Of a stretch of DNA of 64,000 nt, positions 1,311 to 58,838 are shown in pieces. Origin of the DNA: Utricularia gibba. Lineage: Eukaryota > Plantae > Magnoliophyta. The notes beneath the pieces are model-generated. The model was given only the letters and a program-made list of their open reading frames with translations. It was not told the DNA's origin and searched no databases. The stretch lies in NCBI GenBank assembly GCA_002189035.1, contig NEEC01000016.1, positions 1,736,001 to 1,800,000 on the forward strand, in the 5' to 3' direction. The position numbers were made by a program, and so were the translations under genes. How positions within the stretch are numbered: the first letter of the stretch is position 1; every line of letters starts with the position of its first letter.

Positions 1311-4300
1311 TTGCAAACATTGAGAGGTGAGTTTGAGGTGTTGAGGAATAAACCAGGAGAATCAATATCATATTACGTAGTTCGAGTGCAAGATGAACGT
1401 GTTGTTGAAAAAGTCCTGAGATCTTTGGAGCATAAATTTGATCATACTTCAATGGCAATTGAAGAGACAAATGATGTCACTAACATGGCCATCGAGGAAC
1501 TTAGTGGTTCCTTAGAAGCTTATGAAGCAAGATTAAAGAGTAGAGAGGACTCTACATCTACAAAACTACTCAAAGTTAAGGATGATCGTGGGAAGGAAGA
1601 ACAACGAGAACACTTCCCTTGTGGAAGAGGCCACGGTCGAGCCTCTTATTACCGTGGCAGAGGTAGAGGAGGAAATTCTAGGAGGAATTCTAACCAAGAG
1701 AAAAATTCAGAATTTTCTTATCAACATGGAAGAGGAAGGTGGCATACATGAGAAAGAGGAAACTAGATACAAAGAGGTTCCTATAACAGCTCAAACACCT
1801 CAAGGGAAGTGGATAAAACAAGAGTAGAGTGTTATTCATGTCATAAAAAAGGGCATTGCTCTTGGAAATGCATAAATAATATAGGAAATCATCAATCTAA
1901 TTTTTTCTCAAGAGGTCTCAAAAGAAGAATCTGAGCCACTCTTACTTATGGCATTTGAAGAAAAGAGGAACTGGAATTTATGTAAAAAATGGTACTCAGA
2001 TTCAGGTGCGAGCAGCCACATGTGTGGCTATAAAGACATGTTCTATACACTTGATGAAACTCATGTAGCAGATGTGACACTTGGTGACTCCTCAAAGATC
2101 AAAGTTGTAGGAAAGGGTTCTATTGTCTTACAATTCAATGATGCAAGCCACAAGACTATCTCTGATGTTTTATTTGTTCCTTGGATGAACAATAACAGTT
2201 TAAGTCTTGGCCTAACTCCTTGAAAGAGAATATGAAATATATTCAAAGAACAAAAAATTGATTTTATTAAATAAATATGGTTATGTTGGGGCTCACATGG
2301 AGAAGACTCCTAACAAGTTGTTTTGTACTTAAGGACCATGTTTTTCCTATGTGCTTGAAATCAATCTATGGAGAAGAATCATGGATTTGGCATATGAGAT
2401 ATGGACATATTAAATTCTCTCACCTAAATGAGATCAGCAAGAAAGAGATGGTGCTAGGAATGCCTATTATCTTGCACCCTAATCAATTATGTAAAGCATG
2501 CCTTGTGAGAAAACAAACAGGCACAATCATTCCTATGAAATCTACTTTCCGTGTAGAGAGATCACTAGAACTCATTCATGGTGATGTTCACAATCAAACC
2601 AAGCTCTATAGCTGGGAATAATTACATCTTGTTGCTGGTGAATGATTATTCATGGAAAATATGGATGTATCTCATGAAAGAAAAATAAGAGGTATTTGGA
2701 ATTTTTTAAGAGATTCCAAACCATGGCTGAGAGACAAAGCAGGCTTCAACTCAAGGCTCTATGCACTAATCGGGGTGGTGAATTTAGTTCAAATGACTTT
2801 GTTCGTTTTTATGAGGAGCTTGGTGTTCACAAAGGGCTTACTTCAGCAAGAGTGCCACAACAAAATGGGTAGTTGAAACGTGAAACCGTATGGTGATAAA
2901 CATGATGAGAAGTATGTTGAAAACAAAAAACATAAGTACGGAGTTATGGGAGATGATGCTATTATTGCAGTTTATTTGCTCAAAAGATCAAAGACAAGAA
3001 ATGTTCCTTGAATGACGCCACAAGAAGCATGGAGTGGTAGGAAACCATAAGTATCTCATTTACGGATTTTTGGTTGCATTGCCTATGTGCATATTGAAGA
3101 TGAGTTGAGAGAGAAACTGGATGCTAAGACACGAAAGTTGGTGTTCATCAGATATAACCAAACATCCTAGTCATATTAGTTGTTTGATCCTGATAGAAAT
3201 CAGTTTGTTACACAAGCACATGTTACACTTTCTATGACAATTTAGATGATGAAACAAAAAATACTACTCAAAATTCACAGGAAAGTCAGCTAGAAGTCGT
3301 GAATGATAATGGAGGTTGCAACCCATCTATTTCAACACCTAGAGTTGTTGGCACTCCCATATCCACCAGCCAATCACAATTAGGAAGGGGAAGCCGACTA
3401 AGATGTCGTCCGAAAGGCTTTGATGACTATATTGTGGATCTACTAGATTCACTAAATCCAAGCATAAATGTAGACTTAGTGGGTGAAACCAACTATTTCT
3501 CTTATTTCTGTCTTTACTCAGATTGTGAACTATTGTCCTATGAGGAGGCCAACAAGGTGGTTCAATAGAGAAAAGATATAGATGAAGAGATTGGGTCTAT
3601 CTAAAAAAATAAGACATGGAAACTTGTCCAAAGACCATCACACAAGAATCCTATTGATGTTAAATGGTTCTACAAGATCAAATGAAATGCTGATGGAAAG
3701 ATTCAAAGATTCAAAGCTAGACTCGTAGCCAAAGGTTACAAATAGAAGGCATGAGTTGATTTTGAAGAGGTTTTTGCATAAGTGGCTAAAATCAAGACAA
3801 TGAGATTTCTGATTGCATTGGCTGGATAAAACTCCTTGAAAATCTACCAAATGGATGTGAAGAATGCTTTCTTAAATGGAATTCTAGAAGAAGAAGTATA
3901 TATTGATCAATCACCAAGCTATGTGACTAAGGGTTCTAAAAACAAAGTGCTATGGCTCGAGAAAGCACTTTATGATTTAAAGCAATCACCAAGGGCCTGG
4001 AATGTTAGAATCAATGAATATTTTTTGAAGATGGGATTTTGTCGCTGCTCACATGAGTATGCTCTATGTGCTCATGAAATTAAGAGTGGAGATATCCTTA
4101 TCATTTGTCTCTATGTGGATGACTTGATTATCACAGGTTTTGACTTGCAAGGTCTAGTTGATTTCAAAGAAGCCATGAAAAAGGAGTTTGAGATGAAAGA
4201 TTTGGGCCTTATAAACTTCTAGGCATTGAAATGGAGTAAATGGAGTCTAGTATATTTGTCTATCAACAGAAGTTCGCTAGAGATATTCTATTGAAACATG

Positions 4301-5008
4301 AAATGCATGAATGTAGCTCTATTGATATGCCAGGTGAGGTAGGAATCAAATTAACACTAGATGAACCTATGCAGAGAGAGTGGACTCAACTTAGTTTAAA
4401 AGCTTAGTTGGCAGTCTACATTACTTGACAAACACATGATTAGACATACTATTTGGAGTGGGTCTTATTAGTTGCTTTATGGAGGCATCTACTCAAACAC
4501 ATTTGAAAGTAGCCAAGCGGATCCTAAGGTATTTGAACGGCACCATTGACTATGAATTATGGTATGGGAAATTGGACAATTCTGAACTAGTAGGATACAA
4601 CGATAGTGATTGCATTGGAAGTAAGGAAGACTCAAGAAGCACCACTAGGTTTGTCTATTTTATTGGAAGTTCTGCATTTTCATGGTGTTCTAAGAAATAG
4701 CCTATAGTTACTCTTTCTTCATGTGAAGTTGAATATGTTGCTGCGAATGCATATGTATGTCATGGAATCTGGTTGGGTTATCTATTGGAAGGACTCGAGT
4801 ATCTACAGGTTGAACCAACTAAGATAATGATTGATGATTGACAACAAGTCTACAATTGCTCTTCGAAGGAATTTGGCCATGCATGGAAGAAGCAAGCATG
4901 TTGAGACAAGCTATCACTACATAAGGGATTGTGTTGCAAAGAAGAAGGTTGAGTTGTTGTACGTGAAGAGTGAAGACCAAATAGCAAACATTTTCACTAA
5001 ACCATTGA
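1311..5008 (+). pseudogene. Copia gag-pol, multiply disrupted; the last RNase H codons continue at 10477-10540
   Basis: Gag (1311-1751), CCHC knuckle CYSCHKKGHCSWKC (~1830), protease WYSDSGASSHMC (~1990), pre-integrase WHMRYGH, integrase, RT (YQMDVKNAFLNG, LYVDDL), RNase H (DNKSTIAL...RSKH, DQIANIFTKPL). Confidence 0.93.
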
Positions 5009-5531
5009 GGGCGCGTTTGGTTGCTGGGGTTGGCCTAAACCTAGGTTTAGTTTATTTGGGTTTAGGGAACCCGGTTTCGTGGGTTTAGGGTTTAGAAATC
5101 GTGTTTCGTTGATGGGTTTACATTATTTGGGTTTAAATGAACCCACGTTTGGTTGGTGGGTATAAAATTGGGTTTATATATAATTTTCATGGGAATTTAC
5201 TAATATAGCCTTTTACACTCGTCCACCGCCTTCCACACTGACTTAAACAATCAGACATATTCCTCTTTATTACCTAGTTTTCCCAATTCGTCCACCGACT
5301 TTCACACTCGGTTTTGGTGGTGCTGTCGATCGAAGAGATCTCTCGATTTCACAAGTAATTGAGAGTGAAGAGCCATGGGTTAAGTCCAGTTTGTATACTC
5401 TCTTCGTTGCACAGAGTTTGTCGTTTGAAATCCGTTGAATTTTGAGTGAATTTTACGGTTTACTTGTGGTAAGTGCTCGGTGTAGGTGCTTTGTTCTTGC
5501 TGTTTTCTTTCCTCCAGCACAGATTGCAGGT

Positions 5532-6581
5532 ATGCACAGCCCAATCGTGGTGGAAGAGTCTCACAAGAAAACGAAATGCGCCTAGAAGCCAGATGAGGAG
5601 AAAGACTTGTTGCACGCTTTGAAGCAGATAGTGAAAGAAGGCTGGAAAATTGAGATTGGTTTAGGGGTGGGTATCATCGAGCGTTAGAGACATAGTTCTT
5701 GAAACTCCGCCCTAGAACCGACATTCGCGCACACTCGCATATATCTAGCAAGGTGCATACCTGGAAAAAAGACTACTACCTCCTTGTAGATTTTTTATCT
5801 AGGTCGGGCACCGGTTTCAGTGAGCTGACCTACACCGTAGACACAGACAATGAGGTTTGGAAGGAGATTGATCAGGTACGTATGCCTTGTTGTCGCTGTG
5901 TTATATCCGGTGCTGACCGTGTTATTATGTCAGCATGCACCCAGACTGCGTGCCCTAAGACACAAAGCGTGGCCGTCTTACATGGAGTGGCAAGAAATCT
6001 TTGGAAAGGATCAGGCTATAGGAGAAAAAACGATGAGCTATGTTCACGCGACCAGGAAGAGAAAATTCATGGAAAATGTTGGGGAGAATTTGGAAGTATC
6101 TTCGAATTGCCCTCTAGACTCGGATAGCACTGGACACGATATGAACTTCTCGTATGCTAACACACCTTGTGACCCAATTGGTTGTGCTGCGGAGGGTGTG
6201 AACGTCACGCCTAGTAGGGACTCCGAGTCACACAAAAGCACCGACTCGTCTCGATGGACTGGACGAAGCAGCAGGAGACCGAGGGGAATCGACGATGATG
6301 TGCAGTTCATCAAAGAAATGTAGGAGCTTAACGTGCGCACATGCGAAGAGCTACGTCACTTGGGATTAACAGTGGTGCAGCAAGCGCGTGAGTTGGTGGA
6401 TAATCAGCGTCAGGCAGGGGAGATCATTAGAGGTATGTCGGTGCAATTAACTGCCATCGAACGTTTTACCATAGCAGAGATAATTAGTTCCAACCCTACG
6501 AGGTTGCGCTACTTCCTTGCCTCTAGTGACTGTGAAAGAGAGCTTATTGTGCATGGTTTAGCATCAGAACATAGATCTTAA
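5532..6581 (+). pseudogene. PIF ORF1, Myb/SANT-like DNA-binding protein, disrupted
   Basis: KTKCA*KPDEEKDLLHALKQIVKEGWK ... ISSKVHTWKKDY ... SGTGF ... DNEVWKE, then a probable short intron, then KAWPSYMEWQEIFGKDQA. This is the typical plant PIF Myb/SANT-like ORF1 pattern, with a stop and a frameshift. Confidence 0.85.
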
Positions 6582-6967
6582 ATCTTTTGTGTGGTGCTCC
6601 GTCTTATATTAGACTCATGGACTAGATGTATTTTATCTTCTATTCATCCTTTAAACTGGTATGAGCACTGCAAAGGGTAGACAGTGTTCTGACTTGCGCG
6701 GTGCTTTGTTCTTGAGCACTTTTCCGCAAACATTGTACTGCAACTACCGCCACATTCATAGTGGTGCTATCGAGAAGTGATGGACTAGCACCGCGCTGGT
6801 GCTGCATATTACGAAGCACCACGTCTAGACACAAGGTTTCAAATCCATAGACGGCACCGGATGTTGAACATCCGGTGCCATTACGATAAGTGGTCGATAA
6901 AAAACTAATAAGGTCGACATAGGATAGTTCACGCAAGATCCATGCAATTTCAAAGGTGCACCGTCGA

Positions 6968-8790
6968 TTACACAAGAATCTTGTAATGCTTCCACAATGG
7001 GTGTTCCTCGTCTATTGGACATTGACCTACCCGATGGCGATCGACGTGCGTGGGTACATCCATTTGGTCAATGAGAACTTCCAGGAACGTCTTAATATCT
7101 CCCCCTCGAACCATCAAACAATCATTGACCGCGGTGTAATTGAAGGTGGTTGAGAATATGGCATTTTCGGGCTGTCGAATGAAACTAAACAAGTGAAATA
7201 GGATGCAAGATGGTGGAGAATGAGCACAACCAGAAACTCACTGGGGTGTACTTGAAGGTGGTTGAGAATATGACATTTTGCACCCCATACATGATTCAAA
7301 AGCTTAAGCTTAACTGTGTTGTTCCTGTTGTCGTGCACTGGATAATCGGTGTCCACACACTTGGATCCATCCCATTGGAAGACGAGCTTGCTGGCTGCTG
7401 CAGTCCCTAGTAACCATTGAATCACATCGTGCAATTGTTCACTGCCACATGTCATCAGAAAAAGAAAATGTCAGCAGGAATGTAGACCCCCTTGTCTGCT
7501 AGGTGGTTAGTCTTACCGCCCTCTTGAAGACCAGATGGCGACGTCAAAGTGTTCCATGCAAAACTATATCAACTCACGTGCACCTGGTTGAAGATACACT
7601 ACAACCAAAAGAAATAGTACTGACACATGCACCAAATATTAAATGCATATCAATGACATTGCATTACCGTTTCGCCCGTAAATGACGGCATCCGGCTTTG
7701 GCGCTCCCCATCTGACTTCGCGAGGATACACAATGTCTGCAAGTACGCCATTCACATCAAATATAAGCAACTTCCGTGGGTGGGGCCGTGAAATCACTCA
7801 ACAGTCCACCATATGGCCACCTTGCTTCATACCCTGCAAGCCGACCACAGAGATCAAGATTCTCTACGTACAGTCTGCCCATTTGGATATACTTTGCACT
7901 GGCAGCACCGCACCCGTCGTCGTGTGTCGAACTCGCTGTTGGCCCCGCCGTGTTGCCCCCGACTTCTGGCTGCACATCTTCATCTTCTTCATGGGTCACC
8001 TCCTCAAGAGCATCATTTATACTCCTATGTTGTCTATAGTGTCGAGGGGTTACGCACCACAGATGCTGTGTCCTAGGGGCATTGATGAAGGGGGGCAAGA
8101 CATCCTCCAAGGACTTTGTTTTGCAAGAGAACAAATTCACAAACCTCCTTGCCGCACGTTTTGGCAATACCTCTATGCCTACAACGCAAACAGCAAAAAA
8201 ACATGAGTACTGTTCAACAAGACATGTGAATATCCGAAGTAATTGCTTATGATTACCTGATGGGTGTCCCACATTCTATGACACTGTCTACGTTGGTCAT
8301 TCTGCAACGGTGGGTGGGCATACCCATACAAAACTGGTCCACCAATCATCATATGCGCTTCTCACGTCTGTAACCAGTACCACACCAGGTTTTCCATGAA
8401 GCGAGTAGTGCGGACTCCCCTTGCGTTGGACACAAACAGAAACCGTAAAGAAGACACGCATTTCCGAGGATATGTCCTCTTCACAGATCTACAGAAATGC
8501 GAGAACGTGTGCCATAGAATGCAGTGTGAGGTGGGAGAGTGGGATCTAGAGAGCAGCAAGTATTTGCACCAAGAAAGGGGCGGGGGGAGTCGTAATCCAC
8601 ACCGAAAGTGCTCGGTGCTGACGGCGAATCCCGAACCGCCAACTCTGGATGGCGGTTCGCCGTCCGACGTCTCACCCGGCTGTTTATCCCACATTGTGTA
8701 ACCGTCGGGAATTGAGAAGTGGACACGTAGTTTCTCACATGTCAACATCTGGAAAACAATAGACGTGTTACTCGACGATGGCAACGAAGA
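6968..8790 (-). pseudogene. Cargo gene: Transposase_28-like (Gypsy accessory) domain plus FCP1/NIF HAD phosphatase-like domain, spliced and lightly disrupted
   Basis: N-terminal part: KLRVHFSIPDGY...EHFRCGLRLP/FLVQILAAL*IPL...DDWWTSFVWVCPP (8748-8310). C-terminal part: RKLLIFDVNGVLADIV (7776-7729), GT-AG intron 7667-7599, VYLQPGARELI*FCMEHFDVAIWSSRG, intron 7516-7442, EQLHDVIQWLLG...KLVFQWDGSKC, then FIRQPENAIF...GGDIKTFLE...VGQCPIDEEHPLWKHY. How the two halves are joined is uncertain. Confidence 0.75.
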
Positions 8791-9061
8791 ATTTGAAACG
8801 CAAAGGGCAAAGGTGCCTACCGTCGCGATGCTGTTCTAGAGAGGTTGCCGAGGAGACTGTTTTCGTGGTGTTGCTGCACGTTTGCCGAAAGGGTGGAGTT
8901 GGATGGGCAGAATTAATGAAGTTGTTTTGGAAAGTGCACAATGTCAGACACCTTTATTGCGCACAGGGGAGGTATTAATAGCACTAGGCGGTTGTCAACA
9001 GCCCTTCGCATTTAATGCTGGATAACTGCAATATTTTATGGCGTTTTGTTTTTGGAACTCA

Positions 9062-9438
9062 TAACACCGGATTAGGTTTTCGTGGTGCTGTGGAATGCAT
9101 AGCATACCTCAGGCATTTGGAAACACCGCATATTACGGATCGCGGGGTTTGGTCAAATGGAGTATTATTGTACTACCAATCACCCACGCTAACATGTACG
9201 AGCTGCGTACACATCTACTTCTAAGATTTGATAGCACCGGATATGAGGAAGCATCCGGTGCAGCATTAAACGCAGTATAGCCCAAGCGTATAGAAGCACC
9301 GGAGTTTACGGATCGCGGTGTTCGGTCAAATGATGCTTTGATGTACTACCAAATACCCTTACTACTATGCACTAGCTTCACACTCATCTAATCTTCGATT
9401 TTATGAGCACCGGATACGATGAAACACATGGTGCTGCC
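9062..9438. repeat. Diverged ~173-bp tandem repeat (about 2.3 units) inside the PIF element
   Basis: TACGGATCGCGG at 9134 and 9307; GCACCGGATA at 9234 and 9407; a partial third unit from 9062. Confidence 0.75.
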
Positions 9439-9990
9439 CACAACGTTGGTGTCGTACAACTCTATTTAGGGGATCGACCACCATCTCCTTTCGAATGACG
9501 TTATGAAGTAAAGCACATGCCAATACAATGCGGTTCTGTGTGTCTAAGGAATAGTAGCTAGCCGTCCGTAGTATACCCCACCGCATCTTCATCAAGCCCC
9601 AAGCTCGTTCGATCACATTTTTGGCTGATGCATGCCGCATGTTAAATAACTCCTTCGCATTTTGGGGTGCTCCATTTCCCTGGCCCCACTCCTTCAAGTG
9701 GTAACGTACTCCACGGTATGGTGCCAAAAAGCCCTCCCTATTGGCGTATCCATTGTCACATAGGTAATATGTTCCTGTGTCATCACGTATACCAGGTGCA
9801 TAAAATCATTGGAATCAAAGGCGCAAGGGCTAAACAAGTGAAAGACCTGGTGTACACGGAAGTGAATACTTGTCTAGGAATCTTGTCTAGGAATCTTGTG
9901 AGTAAGTGAATACTTACGTCTCAGCCTATATCCCCTACGGTATTTCCTCCAATGTAAGTATACTAACACATTCATCTGCACCAAGTATTC
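9401..9990 (-). pseudogene. PIF DDE transposase with an internal deletion
   Basis: N-terminal basic stretch LHWRKYRRGYRLRRKYSL jumps to GTYYLCDNGYANREGFLAPYRGVRYHLKEW...NVIERAWGLMKMRWGIL...ACALLHN. The core containing the first catalytic Asp (DGT motif) is missing. Confidence 0.88.
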
Positions 9991-11199
9991 AGTCAAAACT
10001 ACCGCTGCCGCACTCAACATAACATGACCCTCCGTGAAAAAATCCATGTCCCCTCAACAGTCACCAAAATTGAGCAAATTAGGTTCACTAAAACAGCACC
10101 ACAGATTCTGAAATTGGAAATTCATAGATAAAAATCCACTATGCGGTGCTACCGTGGACCAACCCACCAAGAACAGAAAGCATACTTACCGAAAGACCAC
10201 CCTCTTGCGCTCGAACAGGCGATGCTACTGGCAAAGCACGAACAAATTCTGGGTTATGGACCTGCGTTCAAATGTAGTTCACGCGAGGGCAAAAGTGGAA
10301 GTGCCGAGCTGGGTTTAGCTAAACCGACCCCCCCTGGGTTTAGCTAAACCCAGCTCCACGGGTTCCCGCCTGGTTTATGGTCAACAGGTGGGTTTATTTT
10401 TACCCACCTGAAACCCACGAACCAAACGTGGGTTTATGACTAAACCCACGCCGCAACCCAGCAACCAAACGCGCCCTGAAGGCAATGGTTTTTCAGAAAC
10501 TCAGGTTTCTACTTGGTGTGAAGAAGTCAAGCTTAAGGGAGGATGTTGGATGATAACCTTGACTTAGATAAGAACTACTAGATACTTACTATGGATAAGA
10601 TTAGGAAGTTGCAGTTACTAAAAGTTATATGGATAAATATCTCAATTATGTACGCATTAATACATTGGTGTAGAATGCATTAATTTCCACATTCCTTTTC
10701 CTGGTTTTATAGAGTATTTTCTCGAATACGTGCCATGTGAAATCAATAGCTTTTGATCCCCAGCCTGCCTATTCCTTCATCGATCAAAAGCTACAGCACA
10801 AGTATACATGATACGATTAAGAATATACAATTCCTTCAACAAAGTTCTCCTTGCTTTTGGTTAATCAAGTTTTCATAACTCATTCTAATGTTTTTCAAGT
10901 GGTCTATGAGTTTTTTGTGTCTCCCATGAAGTGAATCATATTGATCCTTCAAGGCGTTCTTGTCAAATTCAAGTTGTTGAATAATGATGACTTACTCCTC
11001 CAATTTGGCTTCTAACCCCTTGATTGAGATTTTCTTGATCCCATTTTCTGTTGCATTAGACTTTGGTCATGTGTTTGTTAATGCAAGCTATTGATGTCGG
11101 TTGACTTTGGATAAATTTTGTTTGTTTCAATTGGGAAAACTTTGTGACATAGGTTTGACAATTATATACCCCTTATAAAACTCAATCTAATTCAGTGTT

Positions 11200-12280: not shown

Positions 12281-13333
12281 GTGGGTGTAACTAGATATAG
12301 AAAATGTTGAATTGTATATTCGATATTTTTCTCAAAAATTTTAAGAAAGCAAAAACCATAATTATAGATGTGGATGTAAGGATTCCTGAAGACAAATTTA
12401 GAAATGTGAGTAGTTCTAATAGAAATGGAATTAGAGGAAATCTTAAATCATTTTCATTTGATTTAGAAATGTGAGTAATGCAAATTTATTGGACAATGTA
12501 GTAGCACCAAGCTCAACAAAACTACATGATTCAAGATGAATACAAGTATGCATTTGCAAATATAAATTAAATTTATACTATTAAAATAAAGGGTAGTTTG
12601 TAAGAATTAAAGTGTAATAAATAACATTTTACTGAATTTGTAATACATTTATAAGGCTAATCATTTATCAATAATGTGCTATTGATATCGTAAGCCCCAC
12701 TAATCTCATTCCAAACTTTTGCTAGCTTCTTTAGAACCATCTTCTTTAATAGTTTGTCAATGATCTTTATATCAATTAGGGTGACATAAGATGCATCCCA
12801 TTCAAATAAAAAGCAGCTTCGTCTATCATATCCAAAAATTCATCTTTTCAATTGAGTTCTGAAAAAGTGATTGATACAAATAATGTTAGTTTTTAAAAAT
12901 ATAGATAGTATATACATTATGTGATACTATTCATGTGATGACAAAATTATAACATTAAAGCGTTCAAAGCACCAATCTATGAATTTTATAGCAAACAGTC
13001 TATATATTAAAAAAATAAATGTGTAAAGAGTTAATTTTGATAGCTATTAAAATAAAGAGTCAAAGTTAATTAATGTAATAAAAAAAATAATTCATTTTAC
13101 CTTATCGATGATATATTTTTATGTCCGGACTACAAACACGACTATTTCTCGCATTAGCTCTATATGGTGGTAGGTCGCAAAAGATTCCAATTAAATAAAA
13201 AATTAGCAATTTCTTTCCATTGGAGATTTATTGTGGATAACTTCACAGGTACAACTAATTCATGAGACATTGACATCTCTCGATTTTGTAGGTGAGCTCT
13301 TGCTCTTCATCATCTGTAACCTCATTATCATCC

Positions 13334-16222
13334 TGTTAAGGGCAAAAATCGGTATATCGGACTGGGCCGATTTTCGGGTTACGGGTGGTATTGTTTCTTT
13401 CCGTCATCTGTTCATTTTGATCAGATGAAATGAAAATAGGCAGGGATTTTTTACGTGGAAACCACCGTGAGGCGGAAAAACCACGGAGCTATCGGAGCTC
13501 GCCGGAGAAAATGTTCACTAGACGGAGATGGTAGAGAAAGGTACAGGTTGGGAGGCTTGGGATCTCCCCCCTCCGCTATGATTTCTCCTATTTATGGGGG
13601 AGGTTGGTGTGGCCGAATTCCTCTTTTCTGCAAATGTCGGTTGCTCATTGTACTGGTACTATGATCTTCCTTTTCAGATAATCGCCGCCCATTCTGCTAT
13701 GATTTGGCCGCTTTTCAGACTGCGTCATATGGCCGCCGCTGCAAGTTTCTAACACATATCGGTCTATCGGCAGACATTGTCTCCCCAGAGCTTCTTTTGG
13801 CAGCCTTTTCAGAAACCTATTATCTTCGTCCAATTTATACCCCATCATTCAGCCCCTTGGATCTGCCGATATTGATTGATCCAAGGCAATTCGGTGGATC
13901 AGAATTACTATCGTGCCGATTTCGGATACGCTGCTCTTCTATGGGTAGGTCTCGAACCAATTTAGACCGAATTCCTTGCCACTTGTCACCTCCCTGATTG
14001 TGCCACGTCTTTCCCGCTCATTTTGGGCATCTCGAGCATCGCGTCGTTTTGCCTCCCCAATACTTTTTCTATAAGTACGTGCTCCTCCCGTCACTTCTCC
14101 CCTTTGCCTCCTCTGTTCACTCGCGAGATCTTAGCGTTATTTGTGCCCCGTCGCTCTCACCCATTGCCTTCGCCGCCGTACTGCCACCTCGAACTGTGGA
14201 TTTTCAGGTACCAGTCAACGCTTCACACTCTCTGCTGGGCTTTTTTGTGGGTTTGGTTGGATTCCCTTCTTTTGCCGTTTTCCCTTTCCTATGTTTCGTT
14301 TATCTCTAGGGTTGGTTTCTCTTTTCCTTTTTCTGAACATGGGTAGAAGGTCTAGTGCATTGGATCTTCCTCTTCTCCGCATCCGGTATTCGATCCCTGA
14401 TGAATAACAGGTTTTTCATGCTCGGGATATCGAAATCCCGTGGGGATTAGGTGGGAGTCCGCTTCCTCCCTTCAGCTTACCGATTCCTATAGCTTATTTT
14501 GAAAGCGGTCTACGGTTTCCTCTTCATCCCCTGATCGTTCAATTCCTATACACCTTTACCATACCGCTTTATTGCCTCGTCCCTAATTCCATCTTTTGTT
14601 TCGCTACGTTTTTAGTCTATTCGGCTGGTATGGATCCGGCTATGACTTTAGAGGATTTTCTCCACCTTTTCAAAATTGCTGTACGAAAAGCGAAATGCCC
14701 CATGGACGGTCGTTCTCATTTCCAGTTCCGTCGATTCAAAGATAACCCTCACTTCATCGTAAAAGCTCCCAACACCCACCATGATTGGTGGTCCTCTTTT
14801 GTCTGTGTGGCGCCTCCCTTAGGTTTTCGGTGGAACTTTCCGATTAATCCCCCTAGTCCCTTTAGAGTGAAACTCTCTGATGTGTTTCGGTCCTCATCCG
14901 AATATAGAGAGGCTTTGTATGAAAGGCTGAGTCGAGGCTCCTTCCGATTCGAAACTCGGGCCCTCATGTCTTCGGCTGAATCGCTGAAGAGGTCCGGCAT
15001 TATCAATTGTTCTCGTGACCCCCACTGGCCAGATATCGTGCCCTCCGAAGGCACTAGTTTGCCAACTCCTCCTTTTGGCCCTTCCCCGAGTCCCTGACTC
15101 GTCCCGGTTTCATCCCCGAATACCCAAATTGCTCAACCCGTGGCCCCCAAGAAAAAGAAAAGGGTTAAGGCAGTCGTCCATAAACCCTCGAAAAAGCAAA
15201 GAGGTAGTTAGGTGTTATTTTTCCAACTTTCAAATCCAGTTCGATGCCTTACTGCTTTCCCAATTTTTGCTTGCAGTTGAAGAGATGGCCCGAAGAAGTG
15301 CCTTGGAGAATTCGGTGATGGCTCGCTTTTCTGCCAAAATGCAGAGGATGCAGGAGTTGGAAGTGGCTCCTCCTGTACGGACTTATCTTTCACTTATCGG
15401 CTACTGTGGGTATTCGACTTTGATTTTTTCCAATTCTCCTTTCAGGTTGGTCCGCGTGAGGTCTCTCCGAACACTAGTGATCGTCCCGCTGAGGAGGATC
15501 AAATAACGGAACTCTCCAGGGCTCAGGATCCGACTCCCTCTCCCTCGATCAGAAAGGGAAAAGAAAAGATAATGCCTTCACCCGATCTCACCGAAGCGCC
15601 GGCTCATGACATAGGGCTCCCTTCGACAGGCGCCTCCACATCGGTTCCCACGAATGGAGCACAGGGGGACCCTGCTCCGATAGAGGTAGAAGGCGATCCG
15701 GCGCTTCCCCCATGCTGGATGAAGCTGTACCGAGTCTTCCGTACGTTCAGCTGGAAATAATACTCAAGGGGATTTGGCAGGTATTGATCCTTTACCTTCT
15801 CAGTGTCGTTCATAACAGCTTTCCAACTTACTAGTTTTTTGTTAGGCCTTGACTTTTGGATGGGGGCTGGCCAAGAAAGTCGGATCTCAACCCAGGGAGG
15901 TTGTTCGGCTTCAAAAGCAGGTGGAAGCTCAAGATGCCAAGATGAAGTTAATGGCCGAGGAAGGGAGTTCTCTGCGGAGTATCTTGGGAAAGCATGACCG
16001 CCGGGAGGAAGAGTTACGGAACGTGATCGAGGAGATGGGGAAAGCGGTTGACGACGCCCAATCGAAGAGGGAAGGCTTCAAGGTTAGATTCGAAGAGACG
16101 GAAGCCGAATTAAACGAGGCCAGAGATCACATCGCGACTCTGGAGGCCGACTTATTAAATCGGGAGGCGTCTCGGCGAAACCTTCTGGATGATTTCGTCA
16201 ACTCAGCATGCTTTTTAGAGTT
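13334..16222 (-). mobile_element. Truncated Retand/Tat-like Gypsy element (one LTR, 13334-13847, plus the antisense accessory gene)
   Basis: TGTTAAGGG...CCCCATCA LTR. The internal region is collinear with 53740-56125. Similarity stops abruptly at ~16222. Confidence 0.88.
14339..16222 (+). pseudogene. Retand-type antisense accessory ORF (Transposase_28-like domain, NLS, coiled coil), truncated
   Basis: MGRRSS...LRIRYSIPDE*...FESGLRFPLHPLIVQFL...HHDWWSSFVCVAPP, then PKKKKRVK, probable GT-AG introns, then a heptad-rich segment LQKQVEAQDAKMK...ELNEARDHIATLEADL. Confidence 0.8.
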
Positions 16223-26402: not shown

Positions 26403-26810
26403 GTGCACATTTGGTTGGTGGGTAACACTTAAACCCAAGTTTCATTTATTTGGTTTAGATAAATGGATTTTATGGGTTTAGTAGATTAGTCGTATTTGGT
26501 TGATGGGTTTAGTTTATTTGGGTTTAATATAGAGATACGTTTGATACATGGATATAAAATTAGGTATAAGATGAACGTATATACGACATTACTAATATAC
26601 CCTTTAGTTAAATAAAATTAATTATTACATATTTTAATTTTCTAAATCATTTTACAAGTTCAATCAAGCACCGCATAGTATAAATCATGGTGCTTAGTTG
26701 AAACTATATTTTGTAGCAAGCAACGTGTAATAATAGATACGGTGCTTGTCTTCAAAACGAAAAACTCACATTTAGCAACAAAAACAAAAACCCACTACAT
26801 GGTGCTCGTA
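26403..26810. mobile_element. Decayed left end of a PIF element related to 5009-10476
   Basis: TTA followed by GTGCACATTTGGTTGGTGGG (15/20 to the TIR). Shares GATGGGTTTA/TTATTTGGGTTTA subterminal blocks and TTACTAATATA with 5041-5210. Confidence 0.65.
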
Positions 26811-31628: not shown

Positions 31629-34600
31629 GGGGGTGTTTGTTTGGATGGTTTTTGTGGGATTTCGGAGGATTGAATTTAAAATCGTGTTTGATTGGAAAAA
31701 GAGGACTTCATTAGATTTATTAAAAGGATTTTGAAAACCATTATACATGCCTTTTTAGAATTCAATTTTTATGGACCAGATTCTTAAATCCTCTTATAAA
31801 AAGACATAATTGTCCTTATGAAAAATAAAAGAAATTGTTATAATTTTACATTCTCATCCTTCACCAGAGTCGCAATTCAAGTTTCTCTACTGCTAGTTTA
31901 CATCGGGGTCTCTATCCAGTCTAAATTTGGGCTAGGGATTTGTGGGTAATTGTTTTTTTCTTAAAATCGCTCATTAATTTTCATGTGTTGCTTCATTTTG
32001 TTGGTATTGATTCAAGCTTGTGGGTAACTTTCATATTTGCTATGGGTCTCCATCCATTAGTTCAAATTTAATATTACTTTTAATTATGATGTGGCCTCTT
32101 GGTTTAAATGGATACGTATCAATTTTATCACAATTGCTTTTGTATATGATTCGTGTTTGTTTGATTAGAATCATCAATTATTTGCTCCCATTTTGAATTC
32201 AATTAGTTATTGGTGGAAGATTAATTTTGAATGATATTTTAGGGGATATGGATTCGTTTGCCTAATGTGAATTTTTGTTGCCAATTTTGAAGTTCCATGC
32301 CAACAATATGTTTGTGATGAATTTTGGTAATTATGATTTTGAAAGCGATTTCTAGTGCCAATGATGAGGCCTAGACTTACATATTGTAGAAAGATCGAAT
32401 ATCAAAGCATCCTATGAAAATCTTAGATTGAGTGAAAGTATGTTTAAACGTATTTGTGAATTACTAGTTGTTCATGGTGGTCTTAGACCATCAAAGTATG
32501 TATTTGTGTCTGAAAAATTAGTTATGTTTCTTGGAGTATTAGACCACCATAAGAAAATGAGAATTCTAAAGTTTGATTTTAAAAGGTCGATCCAAACGAT
32601 AAGCAAGTACATCAAGACTATTCTTCGTTATATACTTAGATTGCATGATGTATTCTTAGCCAAACCCAAACCTATAAAACGTGTAAATGTCTTCAAATTT
32701 TTTGAAAATTGTTTGGGAGCCTTAGATGAAACTTATATTGACTTGAATGTAAATGAATTCTACAAACCGAGATATAGAACTCATAAAGGTGGAATATCAT
32801 CCAATATTCTAGGAGTTTGTAATAAAAAATTCTAATTTATCTACATTTTTTTTGGATGGGAAGGCTCAGCTGCAGATAGTCGTGTACTATGGAAATCTCT
32901 TACACGAGAACTTGGCTTATGTGTGTGCAGAGGAATGCTTATGACTTATATCGCTGCACGTTTTTTTTGGGTGTTGCTACTAATTTAGTGTAAATGTTTG
33001 GGGTGTGTAGGTTATTATTATCTTGCAGATTGTGGTTACACTAATTGTGAGGGTTTTATCACACCGTTTTGGGTAGTTTGATATCATCTTAAGGAATGGG
33101 TTCCTAGAACACAAATCCCTCAAAATGCAAGAGAATACTACAATATGAGGCATGCAAAAATAAAAAGTGTTACTTCACAATTTTATTCTACAATTGAAAT
33201 AGCTTGGGGAATAATGAAAAAGATATGGTGTATTCTTTGCAACCCTTCATTTTATTCTATCAATACACAGAGTCGCCTAATAATTGCTTGTGCGTTATTT
33301 CACAATTTTATTTTTTAAGAATTGGTTGAGGATCCTTTAGATGCGAAGTACCGAAGGATTATTGATAAACGGAAATTTTAGCATATCGTTGCAATAAAAG
33401 CAAACTTCTATATCAAATAAATTTATAGTCCCTAATCTACACAAAATACAAATTTAAAAAACTTATATAGTGGATTTCGGGGTCGATCACAAGGAACTTG
33501 TGCTTGCTTAGTGTTCTAGTAGATGCATAATTTGTTATAACATAAAGTCTTAGTCTAAGCTCGGACTAGCAGTGGAAAATATGTTCAGTAAACGAAATCA
33601 GGTTTCAATGCGAAAGGTAGAAAGTACTGGTTCTAACTGAGAATAATACGTAAATGCCTTAAGGGTTTGCAGGTGGTGTGGTGCTAAAATGTCTAAGTTA
33701 AATTACCATATTCCTGCACCCACAACTTCAAATCACCTAGGTCTACCCAGGTTATTTGTCATATTTTCAGCTAAGCTAGTCTCTAATATCATCACCAACA
33801 TTACAATTAGGTCTACCCACATGTAAAGTGTATAGAACTAGATCTACCCAGTTCTATTAGTTCTACCCCGGACTAACACCTACTGTACTCATCTTGATTT
33901 GTTGGTCTACCTCTAAACCAAGCTTCTTAGTCGCGAAATTACTTGTTCTCCTCCTTAGGTCTACCCATGGAATGATAGAAACAAGAACTAAAAAACAATG
34001 ATAAATTTTACTAAGAATCCTAGACCCACACCACCATGCTTCACCTTAATACATCCCTAAGCTTCTAGTTACTCATACTTTAAAGGTAAAATATGATAAC
34101 ATTAACATAAAATGATAAAAACGTCAAGAACATCGTGAAAGAGTTGGTTGCAAAAACTGAAAACATAAACAAACTAAAATAAAGCAGTAAGAGTTCTGGT
34201 TTCCGTCTGCTACTGTTCCTGGACCGGAACAGTAGCACTGAACTGGTTCTGATACTGTGCTTGAGGATGAAGATCTTCTTCTCCTCTTCTAGTCAGTGTT
34301 TTTCGTGTTCAAGTTGAAGGAGAAGTCGTTGGAGGTTGCTGGGGGAGTTCGTCCCGACGTTGGAGGTCAGTGGTGTTGGAGGGAAAACCCTCGTGTGTCT
34401 TCTCAAAACTTGTCTTCCCCCTTTTCGAAAAATATCTTCCCTCATTTACTCCTATGCATTGTTCCTGACACCAGCACTCTTCTTGGCTTGAACCTGCAGA
34501 CTACAGGTGGTAGAACAGTGCTCGTTGTCCCTCTTCGGTTGTTGCGTCCTTTTCTACTTGTTCCACACGTTTGTGAGTCTGATTATGCTACTGATCTCCC

Positions 34601-53213: not shown

Positions 53214-56200
53214 TGTTAAGGGTGAAAACTGGTTAAGTGGGTTGGGTTGGATTTTCGGTTATGGAGGTGATCGGAAATGCAACTTTCGTATCCCTCCTCT
53301 CGTGATCCATTCGGTTTTACCAGGCGAAATGAATGTAGGCCGAGATTTTTTACGTCTAAACCGTCATAAGACGGAAAAACCACGGAGCTATCGGAGGTCG
53401 TCGGAGAAGGTTTTTTAATAGTGGGATGTGGTGATGGAAAGTATAGGTGGGAGGTCTGGGATCGAACCCCCCTCCGTTATGATTTATAGGGGAGGTTGGT
53501 CTAGTCGAATTCCCCTTTTATGCAAATATTGGTCACTCATTGTACTTGTACTATGACCTTACTTTTCAGACGATCGCCGCCCATTTTGCTATGATTCGAC
53601 CGCTTTTCAGATTGTGCCATACGGCTGTCGCTGCAAGTCTCTAACACATATCGGTCTGTCGGTAGACACTGTCTCCTCAGAGCTTTTTTTGGCAGCCTTT
53701 TCAGAGATCGATTATCTTCGTCCGGTTTATACCCCATCATTCAGCCCCTCTGATCTGTCGATATTGGTTGATCCAAGGCAATTCGGTGGATCAGAATTAC
53801 TACCGCGCCGATTTCAGATACGCCGCTCTTCTATGAGTAGGTCTCGAGCCGATTGAGACCGAATTCCTTGCCACGTGTCACCTCCCTGATTGTGCCACGT
53901 CTTTCCTGCTCATTTTGGGCATCTCGAGCGTCGCATCGTTTCGCCTCCCGAGTACTTTCTCTATAAGTACGTGCTCCTCCCTTTGCTTCCTCTGTTCACT
54001 CGCGGGATCTTAGCCTTTTTTGTGCCCCGCCACTCTCGTCCGTTGCCTTCGCTGCCGTACTGCCACCCCGAACTATGAATTTTAAGGTACCAGTCAACGC
54101 TTCACACTCTCTGCAGGGCTTTTTTGTGGGTTTGGTTGGATTCCCTTCCTTCTTCTGCCGTCTTCCCTCTCCTAGATTTTGTTTATCTCTAGGATTGGTT
54201 CCTCTTTTTGTTTTTCTGAACATGGGTAGAAGGTCTAGTGAATTGGATCTCCCTTCTCTCCGCATCCGGTATTCGATCCCTGATGAATACCAGGTTTTTC
54301 ATGCCCGGGATACCGAAATCCCGTGGGGATTAGGTGGGAGTTCGCTTCCTCCCTTCAGCTTACCGATCACCATTGCTTATTTTGAAAGCGGTCTATGGTT
54401 TCCTCTTCATCCCCTAATCGTCCAATTCCTATACACCTTTACAGTACCGCTTTATTGCCTCGCCCCTAATTCCATCTTTTGTTTCGCTACGTTTTTAGTC
54501 TATTCGGCTGGTATGGATCCGGCTATGACTTTAGAGGATTTTCTCCACCTTTTCAAAATTGTTGTACGAAAAGCGAAATCCCCAATGGATGGTCATTCTC
54601 ATTTCCAGTTCCGCCAATTTGAAGATAACCCTCACTTTATTGTGAAAGCTCCCGACACCCACCATGATTGGTGGTCCTCTTTTGTCTGGGTGGCACCTCC
54701 CTTGGGTTTTCGGTAGAACTTTCCGATTGATCCCCCTAGTCCCTTCAGAGTGAAACTCTCTGATGTGTATCGGTCCTCATCCGAATCTAGAGAGGCTTTG
54801 TACGAAAGACTGAGTCGAGGCTCCTTCCGATTCAAAACTCGGGCCCTCATGTTTTTGGGTGAATCGCTGAAGAGGTCCGGCGTTATCGGCCGTTCTCGAG
54901 ACCCCCACTCGCCAGATATCGTGCCCTCCGAAGGCACTGGTTTACCAACTCCTCCTTTTGGCCCTTCTTCGAGTCTCCGACTCGTCCCGATTTCATCCCC
55001 GAATACCCGAATTGCTCAACCCGTGGCCCCCAAGAAAAAGAAAAGGGTCAAGGCGTTTGCCCATAAACCCTCTCAGAAGCCAAGAGGTAGTTAGGTTTCG
55101 TTTTTTCGAGTTTCAGATTCGTCGTGGGGTCTTACGGTTTCCGCTTTTCGTTTGCAGCTGACGATATGGCCTGAAGAAATGCCTTAGAGGATTCGGTGAT
55201 GGCTTGCTTTTCCGCGGAGATGCAGAGGTCGGAAGCAACTCCTCCTGTACAGGTTTATCGGGTATTTATCGATTGCTATAGGTTTCCGACTCCGACCTTC
55301 AATTTTTCTTTCAAGTTAGTCCTTCTGAAGTCCAACCGAATGTCGCTAACCCCGCTGTTGGGGAGGGTCAAATAACTGAAGTCTCCGGGGCCCATGATCC
55401 AACTCCCCCTCTAACAGTCGGCAAGGGGAAAGAAAGGATCCCGCCTTCTCCCGATCTTAACGAAGCCCCGACTTGCGACGTAGGGCTCCTGTCGGCGGGC
55501 ACTTCCACATCGGCTCCCCTGGATGAAACACAAGGGGACCCCGCTCCGATAGAGGTGGCAAACGATCCAAATCTTCCTCTGTCTTCAGTTCCTGCCAAAT
55601 TAAGGAGGATGCTAGATGAAGCCGTGACGAGTTTTCCGGACGTTCAGTCGGAAGTTATACTGACAGGGATTTGGAAGGTATGACCCCTTCTTCTTTTCGG
55701 TACCATTCATGACCGATTCTTAACTTTGTAGTTTCTCTCTAGGCACTGACTTTCGGGTGGGGAATGGCCAAGAAGATTGGCTCCCAACCAGAGGAGGTCC
55801 TTCGGCTTCAAAAGCAGGTGGAAGCCCAGGATGCGAAAATGAAGTTGATGGTTGAGGAAGGGAGTTCTCTGCGGAGCATCCTTGGAAAGCGTGATCTTCG
55901 AGAGGAAGAGTTGCGAAATGTGATTGAGGAGATGGGGAAGGCGGTTGACGACGCCGAATCAGAGAGGGAAGGCTTCAAGGTAAGGTTGGAAGAGACGGAA
56001 GCCGAATTAAATGAGGCCAGAGATCGGATTGCGACTCTAGAAGCCGACTTATTAAGTCGGGAAGCGTCTCGATGGGACCTTCTGGAGAGTTTCGTCAACT
56101 CAGCATGCTTTTCGGAGTTATCCGATATCCACGCAGGGGACCTGATCGGTTTGCTCCTCTATCGGCAAAGGCGTCAAATTTGCCGAGAATTCGGGTTAGC

Positions 56201-58838
56201 GATCACAAACCCGCGTTTTGACAGGGTCGATCCCTTGAGGAAAGACAAGAACATGTTGGATGTTATCGCTGATGTGTACCAGCTCCTGAATTTGGATCCG
56301 AAGCAGATCGGGAACGACTGGTAGCACTCATCCGGGTGAGAATCGAACGAGAGAACGAGGTCAAGCTGTGGGCGAGGTGTCGGGGGCATGTTGGCCCCTC
56401 GGTCGGTCCTGACAACGATCCTCCTCCTCCCCCTGAAGTTTAACCTCTTTATCTTTTCTTTTGCTGAACTAATGTTCTTGTCCTTGGTTCCGGGGTTTTT
56501 GAATACTTTGGAATCCCAGTTTGAGATTCTTCTTTCTGATCTACTTATCTCTTACTCCAATTGCCTTTACTGATTTTATGAGTTGCATGATTCGTCAATC
56601 ACCTGACCGGGTTTCTCGTTTGAGTCCTCTCTTATAATCGTGCGATTGTCGCTGAAGGCATAACTCGGGACCTTCCATGGCTTGAGTTATCTTCTTAATC
56701 CAACAAAGGTCCTTTTGGGAAAGTCTCATGCTTTTGGGATATTTTCGTATCTGCTTCGAGTACGATTACCATATCGGGATTTGAGAACATGGGCTTTGTA
56801 TAGAGCTTTTTCGGGGGTTTTCCGGGGCTTGTGTGAGCTGATCGAAGAGACCGGTGCCCGAGTTATATTAGGGCTTACCCTTATTATTGGAGCCTATGCT
56901 TTGGAGATCATATGCTTAGAAGATAGCTCCGAGTCGGTTTGTAGTGCTCATAACGAGGTTTAGATGTGGGGGATTCGCCCAGGCTTTTGTGACCCAGGAA
57001 ATGGGCGTCTTTTCGCCAACCCTTTGGTTGGGATTTTTTTATTTTTGGTTTGCCTTAGTACTTCCTTACGCGAGCCGAACCGTTGCTATGGAAGTACACC
57101 AGGACCCCTAACGGGTTGAGTAATTTCCCCAATCCGATTGGGCCCTCTTCTGGCCGGAATCTCATTGTTTTGAACATGGGCGAATTTGCTTTGGGTGCTC
57201 TTGCCAACTCGAGGTTCGGCAGTAAGGTTTGAACTTAAGAGCTTTTTCGGGGCTTACGCACACGGTTTGAGGAAACCGCGCCCGAGTGGTACCAGGGCTT
57301 ATCCTTATCATTGGGGCCTGGGTTTAGAAGGCTATAAGTATATGGCGGGGGTTGAATGCGCCGGCCTATTTCGGCAATATTCCCCCTTGAATGACAAGGA
57401 TCCCCCGATTTTGATATGTGGTGCCCAACAGGGGGCATTGATTTACGAGGTTTTCCTGGGCTTATATGACTTGGCCAGGGCTTATGGTTTTAGAATGGAA
57501 GGATTTGCCTGGGCTTATGTGACTCGGCCAGGACTTGTAAGGTTTTTAGCTCAGCTTCGCTTTAGAGGAATTTATTGCCGCTTGCGTACTTTGGTGAAGA
57601 GAGTACCGAGTTTAGCAAGAACCTGCGATGAGGATTGGTATCGAACCGGTTGGGCGTAGAATCTCCTCATATGGGATGCATTCCATGATCTTGGAAACTC
57701 CACGTCATCTAACCGTTCTAGACGATAAGCCCCTTTTTTGATCACGCTCAAAGTCCGATAAGGGTCTTTCCAATTGCATTCTAGTTTTCCTACATGCCTT
57801 TGTGGCTGGATGTTCCGAAGCACCAAGTCTCCTTCCAAGAATTCCCTTGGGGATACCAACTTGTTGTAACTCTTTTGTGTTCTTTCCGGATGAGCCCCTA
57901 GTCAGCCATGAATATTCTATCGTTTTACTTCCAATAATTCCAGCTCCAGTTTTCGTAAGATAGCGTTATCCTCCTTGTTGTAGTATTCCACACTGATCCA
58001 ACTGGACTACCAACTACCCTCCGAGATCTTCGAGTTTGGCCTTCATTCTTTGTCTGATATTTATTCAAGAGGGCATCCATTCTCCCTTCCCATTCCTGGC
58101 TCGTGGGTGACTTGGTTTATGTGTCTGAGGAATATTCTGAGATCAAGGGTTGCCCTGAAGTTGGGGAGAACTTCCATCGAAAGGGGGCCTTCAGCTGCTC
58201 CCTGTTGTTGACCATAAGACCGGGGTTTTGCATGCCGGTGTTGTTTAGTGAGTGGTTCTTGTGGATTTCTCGAGTGGGACTGTGGAACGTAGCCCCACAG
58301 TGGGCACCAAAAATATTAAGGGTGAAAACTGGTTAAGTGGGTTGGGTTGGATTTCCGGTTATGGAGGTGATCGGAAATGCAACTTTCGTATCCTTCCTCT
58401 CGTGATCCGATCGGTTTTACCGGGCGAAATGAATGCAGACCAAGATTTTTTACGTGGAAACCGTCGTAAGATGGAAAAACCACGGAGTTATCGGAGCTTG
58501 CCGGAGAAGGTTTTTTACTAGTGGGATGTGGTGATGGAAAGTACAGGTGGGAGGTCTAGGATCAAACCCCCCTCCGTTATGATTTATAGGGGAGGTTGGT
58601 CTAGCCGAATTCCCCTTTTATGCAAATGTAGGTTACTCATTATACTTGTACTATGACCTTACTTTTCAGACGATCGCCGCCCATTCTGCTATGATTCGAC
58701 CGCTTTTCAGATTGCGCCATACGGCCGCGCTGCAGGTCTCTAACACATATCGGTCTGTCGATAGGCATTGTCTCCTCAGAGCTTTTTTTGGCAGCCTTTT
58801 CAGAGATCGATTATCTTCGTCCAGTTTATACCCCATCA
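53214..58838 (-). mobile_element. Retand/Tat-like Gypsy element, gag-pol deleted, both LTRs present
   Basis: LTRs 53214-53739 and 58314-58838. Perfect TSD GATAC. PBS TGGTGCCCACTGTGGGGCT (tRNA-Lys type) after a TTTT spacer at 58309-58291. Only a gag start and the integrase tail (GDLVLR...W..PY...GAYRL...SWNASH) remain. Confidence 0.94.
54222..56324 (+). pseudogene. Antisense accessory gene of the Retand-like element (Transposase_28-like domain, NLS, coiled coil), nearly intact
   Basis: MGRRSS...LRIRYSIPDEY...DWWSSFVWVAPPLGFR*(TAG)NFP...PKKKKRVK, probable introns, then coiled-coil ORF 55764-56324. Confidence 0.82.

Follow-up and report, generated by a model that had tools for sequence, protein, structure and literature searches.

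A decayed PIF/Harbinger element of Utricularia gibba and its third gene, in which a TRP28-like domain is joined to a NIF-like domain

The subject of this report is a 5,468-bp element in the genome of Utricularia gibba, lying within a 64-kb stretch of contig NEEC01000016.1 (positions 1,736,001 to 1,800,000 of the forward strand; this whole stretch is called the window below, and all coordinates count from its first letter). By its ends and the 3-bp duplication beside them, the element is of the PIF/Harbinger type. For the PHIS superfamily, which comprises PIF/Harbinger and its relatives, at most two open reading frames (ORFs) per element have been described (PMC4482050). In the Utricularia element, ORF1, a Myb/SANT-like gene, and the transposase gene converge on each other, and a third gene in the transposase orientation, called here the cargo gene, fills the 2.8-kb spacer between them. 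From homology, its product would have begun with a domain like TRP28 (PF04195), a hallmark of Retand retrotransposons, and ended with a domain of the NIF/FCP1 type (PF03031). The copy in the window is a decayed member of a highly repeated three-gene Harbinger family, and we consider it rather probable that the chimeric gene of this family was once expressed and selected as an accessory protein. The features of this copy are as follows.

5006-5008: left target-site duplication (TSD) TGA; the flanks rejoin into the copia pol frame
5009-5028, plus strand: left terminal inverted repeat (TIR), 20 bp, perfect, GGGCGCGTTTGGTTGCTGGG
5029-5220: left subterminal region with six GGGTTTA motifs
5532-6581, plus strand: ORF1, a Myb/SANT-like (Myb_DNA-bind_3) gene of two exons, intron 5876-5933, several stops
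6854-6878: hairpin dyad GCACCGGAT..ATCCGGTGC, flanked by the 3′ ends of ORF1 and of the cargo gene
6968-7171, minus strand: cargo exon 5, putative NIF C-terminal part and stop codon (BLASTP E 2e-10, phmmer E 1.4e-6)
7172-7241, minus strand: cargo intron 4, GT-AG, 70 nt, phase 0 after ..NP, position as in host genes
7242-7441, minus strand: cargo exon 4, putative NIF middle part (hidden Markov model E 1.5e-4, BLASTP E 6e-5)
7442-7516, minus strand: cargo intron 3, GT-AG, 75 nt, phase 2, position as in host genes
7517-7598, minus strand: cargo exon 3, 28 codons, motif II ..IWSS.., one TAG (NIF profile E 0.0017)
7599-7667, minus strand: cargo intron 2, GT-AG, 69 nt, phase 1, position as in host genes
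7668-8178, minus strand: cargo exon 2, lineage-specific linker followed by HAD motif I ..LLIFDVNGVL.., frameshift near 7778
8179-8256, minus strand: cargo intron 1, GT-AG, 78 nt, in phase
8257-8748, minus strand: cargo exon 1, TRP28 (PF04195)-like, five stops and one frameshift near 8579
9101-9437: two tandem units of about 165 bp (9101-9264 and 9274-9437), each with a GCACCGGAT..GGTGC dyad, in the interval between the cargo 5′ end and the transposase 3′ end
9404-9805, minus strand: last exon of the DDE transposase, second D and E present (DDE_Tnp_4 E 4e-10)
9806-10260, minus strand: decayed, internally deleted remains of upstream transposase exons
10300-10456: right subterminal region with GGGTTTA/TAAACCC motifs
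10457-10476, minus strand: right TIR, the exact reverse complement of GGGCGCGTTTGGTTGCTGGG
10477-10479: right TSD TGA

The perfect TIRs and the TGA duplication claimed in the preliminary description both stand. The TIRs agree at 20/20 bp, and GGGCGCGTTTGGTTGCTGGG has no further match in the 64 kb, where none would be expected by chance. If the element is excised together with one TGA, a continuous C-terminus of copia pol is restored, ..FTKPL being followed directly by KAMVFQKLRFLLGV.. in frame. Since the 3-bp TGA stands on both sides, the empty site restores the copia frame and the TIRs are present, the insertion is real and of the PIF/Harbinger type. The TSD here, TGA, is not the canonical TWA found in two-gene relatives, and in loose ends of other copies among sequencing reads it is TAA. 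The element that received the insertion is a Ty1/copia element (1311-4222 and 10480-10553), itself broken into short ORFs; its gag, Pol_BBD, gag_pre-integrs and RVT_2 parts lie upstream of the Harbinger element on the same strand as pol. Elsewhere in the window, 26410-26605 is 72.6% like the left subterminal part 5016-5213 and has GGGTTTA motifs, and probably represents a Tourist-like miniature element or one end of a related Harbinger.

The two core genes are both recognizable and both damaged. The match of ORF1 to Myb_DNA-bind_3 in Pfam is weak (E 0.019), and ORF1 exons of related elements align to the window at 5660-5896 (tblastn, E 1.6e-16) and 5955-6569 (E 8e-10); at 6321 this copy alone has TAG, the other copies in the reads having AAG. 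The last transposase exon, of the DDE_Tnp_4/Plant_tran type (second Pfam E value 1e-6), has 279 database homologues, the top ones from Salvia, Sesamum, Buddleja and Striga with 65-71% identity, relatives that point to an asterid as the probable host, and is 61-71% identical to plant Harbinger transposases overall. Neither the DUF8040 part nor the exon with the first catalytic Asp finds a significant match in this copy, so that both look deleted or scrambled and the upstream two thirds of the transposase appear to be missing here. Loose ends of reads at 9459/9468, 10078/10093 and 10198 reveal that other copies hold more sequence in the transposase region. The copy in the window, with its transposase truncated to a remnant, is non-autonomous. 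A second PIF/Harbinger transposase, of a different family, lies at 32383-33342 on the plus strand with DUF8040, the first-D exon and the DDE exon all present, and is 40-53% identical to the Harbinger relatives retrieved for comparison.

Is the cargo limited to this copy? It is not. When the element is divided into 30 bins, contigs from three DNA runs of this organism cover every bin at similar depth, the cargo and both non-coding spacers included, and their likeness to the element ranges from below 90% to above 99%. One type of contig joins ORF1 to the cargo through a 981-bp deletion (6561>7543), so at least one other copy has the two together, and another type joins 5400 to 9007. The family is thus highly repeated, and the reads support a unit which includes the complete chimeric third gene, TRP28-like at one end and NIF-like at the other.

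Among related elements of other plants the cargo was not found: it is absent from five loci with related transposases, and the cargo pieces have no match in six loci of related Harbingers. The two-gene plant PIF/Harbinger elements at four of the fetched loci (L002, L003, L004 and L006) resemble the Utricularia element in the TIR core G...GTTTGG, the 3-bp TSD, the Myb_DNA-bind_3 ORF1 and a DDE_Tnp_4/Plant_tran transposase whose last exon is 61-68% identical to that of the element; in L003 and L006 the annotated Myb ORF1 and the transposase run towards each other, as in the Utricularia element. The difference lies between the genes, where these relatives have 0.5-0.8 kb and no cargo while the Utricularia element has 2.8 kb with a five-exon gene. 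In the literature searched on Harbinger elements with an FCP1, NIF or carboxy-terminal domain (CTD) phosphatase, with a third ORF, with gene capture or with PF04195, we met no account of such an arrangement. A transposable element (TE) family with a retained captured gene is a known kind of thing; a TRP28::NIF chimera in a Harbinger is new in the literature searched.

The cargo gene runs on the minus strand from an ATG at 8748 to a TAA at 6968 in five exons separated by four GT-AG introns of 78, 69, 75 and 70 nt, the first three lengths being divisible by three. A third minus-strand gene had been proposed earlier at 8790-6968 with two in-phase introns; the gene is real, while its start is moved to 8748 and its introns are doubled in number. 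It had also been said that the in-frame stops are mostly TAG or TGA, and indeed all six are. Besides these six stops, this copy has two frameshifts, of which the first falls in a run of C near 8579. Exon 4 is rearranged as well: about 30 codons of its 3′ part, HAD motif IV among them, have given way to 35 nt at 7245-7279 that duplicate the beginning of exon 5 (7133-7167); in a tblastn comparison, query residues 124-146 are missing there. The cargo gene of this copy, with six stops, two frameshifts and motif IV lost, is dead. Other copies in the reads of the three DNA runs are in a better state at several of these points. The TGA at 8299-8297 is TGG in them; some have one base more at 8576 or one fewer at 7778, changes by which the two frameshifts would be closed; and they read DAPYKSLHNP directly before the GTGAGT of intron 4, the residue preceding this stretch being outside the view of the reads.

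What is the C-terminal part? Direct searches with the pieces of this copy gave little. Among ten stop-free pieces of the element, Pfam recognized only DDE_Tnp_4/Plant_tran and a weak Myb domain and found nothing for the cargo; a word-index protein search with NIF exon 4 returned nothing; a search of Protein Data Bank sequences with three NIF pieces gave a weak HAD match on motif I (E 0.12) and otherwise chance matches only; and the ESM Atlas had nothing for exons 4 and 5. For the piece with motif I, the ESM Atlas returned several HAD families including NIF (score 0.83), which serves as a lead only. The identification comes instead through intermediates. Metagenome contigs were scanned with a degenerate pattern, D-D-[SA]-P-Y-K-[AS]-x-x-N-P, modelled on the motif in the other copies, and all 120 loci returned (L007-L126) belong to one family, with ..NTLL.DDSPYKA..NP.. 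and, about 130 residues upstream, (V/I)xDLNG(L/V)L. Six full ORFs of this DLNG...DDSPYKA subfamily pass PF03031 as NIF (E 1e-13 to 2e-42). A NIF profile built from 36 domain sequences, compared with every six-frame fragment of the window (3,339 in all), matches four pieces of the cargo in order, at profile positions 9-25 (E 0.023), 61-74 (0.0017), 78-131 (1.5e-4) and 176-216 (1.2). With the plant NIF ORF L029, the match to cargo exon 5 starts at residue 349, right after a shared intron, and its NIF domain against the whole window gives E 4.5e-11 (tblastn) with a 23-residue gap at the lost motif IV. By this sequence homology, the C-terminal part of the cargo is a NIF-fold protein of the DLNG...DDSPYKA subfamily.

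The subfamily spans marine algae or protists, moss-like sequences and seed plants; its algal or protist members are intronless ORFs of 250-1,056 residues, and in the literature we found no functional study of it, its presumed Arabidopsis members included. It is to be noted that the catalytic motif of the cargo is D-V-N-G-V and not DxDx(T/V), that the whole host subfamily has D-L-N-G, and that every examined member showing motif I has Asn at the second catalytic Asp. As DxN is shared by the whole subfamily, the Asn of the cargo is the subfamily state and not a sign of decay. The only other NIF (DLNG)-like locus of the window is a pseudogene at 12576-13043 on the minus strand, AT-rich, decayed and distant, with intron positions of the host type and the motif ..LLIND*PYKCITNS.. 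(profile E 2.4e-5 and 1.6e-3); its place in the tree is within the seed-plant clade, at the end of a branch of 2.1, and it may be a relic of a host gene or the cargo of another element.

The N-terminal part has likewise been identified at one remove. Two Retand-type TRP28 ORFs, 85% alike, lie on the plus strand of the window at 54075-54716 and 14196-14830; the former is open and is followed by a coiled-coil ORF at 55764-56324, and the latter has a stop. The ORF at 54075-54716 passes PF04195 (27.0 bits, cut-off 26.2), and cargo exon 1 matches it by BLASTP in two collinear places, residues 57-110 (E 7e-6) and 181-209 (E 8e-7), while tblastn carries the match over 100 residues, 110-209, across the Pfam core and through the stops (E 5.8e-4). 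The intermediate homology thus supports exon 1 as TRP28-like. A word-index protein search with the Retand TRP28 ORF found nothing, and AlphaFold run on it without an alignment gave a mean pLDDT (per-residue model confidence) of 34.5, which is unusable. TRP28 is a hallmark of the antisense ORF of Retand elements (Ty3/gypsy, Tat clade); its function is not known, DNA binding has been predicted for it, and the region carrying it has been reported to show no similarity to other known TEs (PMC11963269, PMC6317226). Cargo exon 1 is homologous to the Retand antisense ORF over its full length; it differs from it in standing in a class II element, in being spliced and fused to a second domain, and in lacking the conserved P-N pair of TRP28. 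With an identity of only about 30% to the resident Retand ORFs, and with no DNA likeness between these and the element, the TRP28 part is not a recent nested fragment.

How did a Harbinger element obtain a NIF domain? At plant genomic loci of the NIF family, exon boundaries fall after residues 236, 264, about 286, 348 and 369 in the numbering of L029, and at the nucleotide level the host introns (L017, L077) at the three positions shared with the cargo are of phase 1, phase 2 and phase 0. The same codons are interrupted in the same phases by cargo introns 2, 3 and 4, and exon 3 with its 28 codons has boundaries identical to those of its host counterpart; two further host introns, at about 286 and at 369, are missing in the cargo. 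A tree of 71 rows places the cargo within the intron-bearing seed-plant clade (SH-aLRT 98), apart from the moss-like and algal sequences, a placement which holds at the level of the clade given the long end branch of 1.6 changes per site. The three shared intron positions and phases together with the seed-plant clade show that the element took up the NIF part, in the form of genomic DNA, from a seed-plant host gene. The cargo is thus like plant NIF/FCP1 proteins of the DLNG...DDSPYKA group in motifs, motif order, three introns and clade, while it differs from them in its N-terminus, its two introns fewer and its very long branch; the N-terminal region of the host protein is replaced in the cargo by the TRP28 part and the linker, and PF04195 is not matched by the host NIF proteins examined. 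The preliminary description preferred a lineage with an accessory factor to random gene capture. A third-gene lineage with a family-wide cargo is borne out, while the NIF part is itself a gene capture, so that the alternatives to be weighed are retention of the captured gene and its mere drift.

The pattern of conservation favours a captured gene that was kept. Against 29 plant sequences, with positions conserved in at least 95% taken as host-invariant, the cargo keeps 29/37 host-invariant positions (78%), compared with 25/76 moderately conserved ones (33%; Fisher p 7e-6) and 13/62 variable ones. At the second NIF-like locus (12576-13043) the corresponding figures are 16/28 and 12/32, with no such contrast. 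The retained invariant positions favour past purifying selection on the fold over neutral decay.

Could the cargo nevertheless be a neutral hitchhiker? A progenitor may have transduplicated a host NIF gene and a piece of TRP28, and the chimera may have been amplified without serving the element, like most Pack-type and Pifvine-3 captures. Capture of host DNA with introns has just been described, transduplication by PIF elements is documented and tolerated (PMC2528002, PMC8903248), and this copy is riddled with stops and no RNA from the cargo was seen. Pack-type and Pifvine-3 transduplicates are PIF elements in which amplification goes on despite a load of host exons and introns (PMC2528002); they usually hold gene fragments in few copies, however, while here a complete chimeric gene (ATG, five exons, splice sites, stop) stands in a high-copy family with ORF1 and the transposase. 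Besides, the cargo has diverged far from the host proteins and yet has kept the invariant residues. As for the stops, a rough estimate gives about six in 1.5 kb from this copy's own divergence from an intact master, and at least one of them is private to it. On this balance we judge neutral hitchhiking unlikely, though of sufficient weight to be kept in mind.

Another reading, that a Retand piece merely lies beside a transduplicated NIF pseudogene and that the splice between them is accidental, seems very improbable. It is true that the Retand-type ORFs occurring twice in the window put a donor at hand and that the TRP28-NIF join is seen in no transcript. But the distance between the cargo and these ORFs, at both the protein and the DNA level, does not fit such a donor; exon 1 runs into exon 2 via a 78-nt in-phase GT-AG intron, and the linker and HAD motif I sit together in exon 2. 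Nor is the cargo likely to act as RNA, whether as a decoy or by giving rise to small RNAs that target the host NIF gene: a captured fragment may be transcribed and take on a regulatory role (PMC2528002), but protein identity to the host of about 35-50% implies a DNA identity far too low for targeting by small RNAs, and the conservation tracks invariant sites at the protein level, so we give this hardly any credence.

Several points weigh against a once-expressed and selected accessory protein, and they should be told together. The order of a Transposase_28-like domain followed by an FCP1/NIF domain, as first described, holds for both parts by homology through intermediates and for neither by a direct match: PF03031 has no match on single cargo exons among the ten stop-free pieces searched with Pfam, and PF04195 has none on any stop-free cargo piece, its 69-residue model region being broken by a frameshift and two stops. 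The 136-residue linker, compared by phmmer with 1.84 billion representative proteins, found one spurious repeat protein only, so the fusion was not found in annotated proteomes; linker peptides also found no relative among metagenome contigs. No intact cargo copy was seen among the reads of the three DNA runs, and no cargo transcript either, the one possible RNA contig covering ORF1 only, unspliced. The alignment behind the conservation test was seeded on conserved residues, which inflates the signal of constraint somewhat, and the signal itself could come from a host paralogue before capture. Phosphatase activity of the cargo, and of the host subfamily too, is doubtful in view of the Asn at the second catalytic Asp. 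Lastly, the hairpin dyads described below come without anything tying them to TRP28.

These points notwithstanding, a selected accessory protein remains the reading we prefer, and it would work as follows. In a master element, the third gene would have been expressed and selected as an accessory protein, its NIF part diverging strongly after capture with the invariant residues of the subfamily kept. The TRP28 part, a predicted DNA-binder, may have tethered the protein to element DNA. Three GCACCGGAT..ATCCGGTGC hairpin dyads bracket the cargo (6854-6878, 9234-9261 and 9407-9434), GGTGC/GCACC occurring 7.1 times per kb in the element and 1.0 time per kb in the rest of the window, that is, seven times more densely; these GGTGC-rich dyads are candidate binding sites for TRP28, or else termination sites. 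The NIF part might bind a phosphorylated protein that works in transcription or silencing, or might slowly remove its phosphate, and the outcome could be a modulation of the element's own expression. The dyads also raise the idea that the cargo cassette might be a nested TE; those at 6854, 9234 and 9407 are hairpins and not a TIR pair, and no TSD was seen.

The supposed outcome is modelled on the PMD-PP7 module of plants, MAIN/MAIL1 with PP7L and the fused MAIL3, in which a gypsy-derived domain and a phosphatase-like protein act in transcription and TE silencing (PMC7156037). The likeness, a domain from an accessory ORF of gypsy elements joined to a phosphatase-like domain, is an analogy only: the PMD-PP7 proteins are host genes and not borne by TEs, and neither TRP28 nor HAD/NIF is related in fold to PMD or PPP. 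Closer in circumstance are the KAONASHI Mutator-like elements (MULEs) and the CACTA elements with a ULP-protease domain, where a class II family keeps an extra host-derived part family-wide (PMC2528002). The extra proteins of those elements are unrelated to the cargo and belong to other superfamilies, and the role of the cargo here is only inferred. The same difference applies to the VANDAL group of MULEs. These carry VANC, whose anti-silencing role has been shown experimentally. The searches made suggest no VANC homology of the cargo, no VANC sequence having been compared. At the speculative end, and with little confidence, one may imagine that TRP28 is a portable accessory module moving across TE classes, from Retand to Harbinger, which here enlisted a pseudo-phosphatase domain of the host for contact with the phosphorylated CTD of RNA polymerase II or of the plant silencing polymerases, resulting in a TE regulator or anti-silencing factor of a new type.

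What, then, does the third gene mean for these elements? It changes two pictures, that of PIF/Harbinger as two-gene elements and that of TRP28 as a domain of Retand only, and it shows an exchange of accessory domains between class I and class II elements. It is also a clean and datable example of a PIF element capturing a whole gene with its introns. The fusion of TRP28 to a phospho-protein-binding fold suggests a testable function in the manner of a Rosetta stone, in parallel to PMD-PP7, and the uncharacterised host subfamily of DLNG NIF proteins, conserved from algae to seed plants, gains a lead from it.

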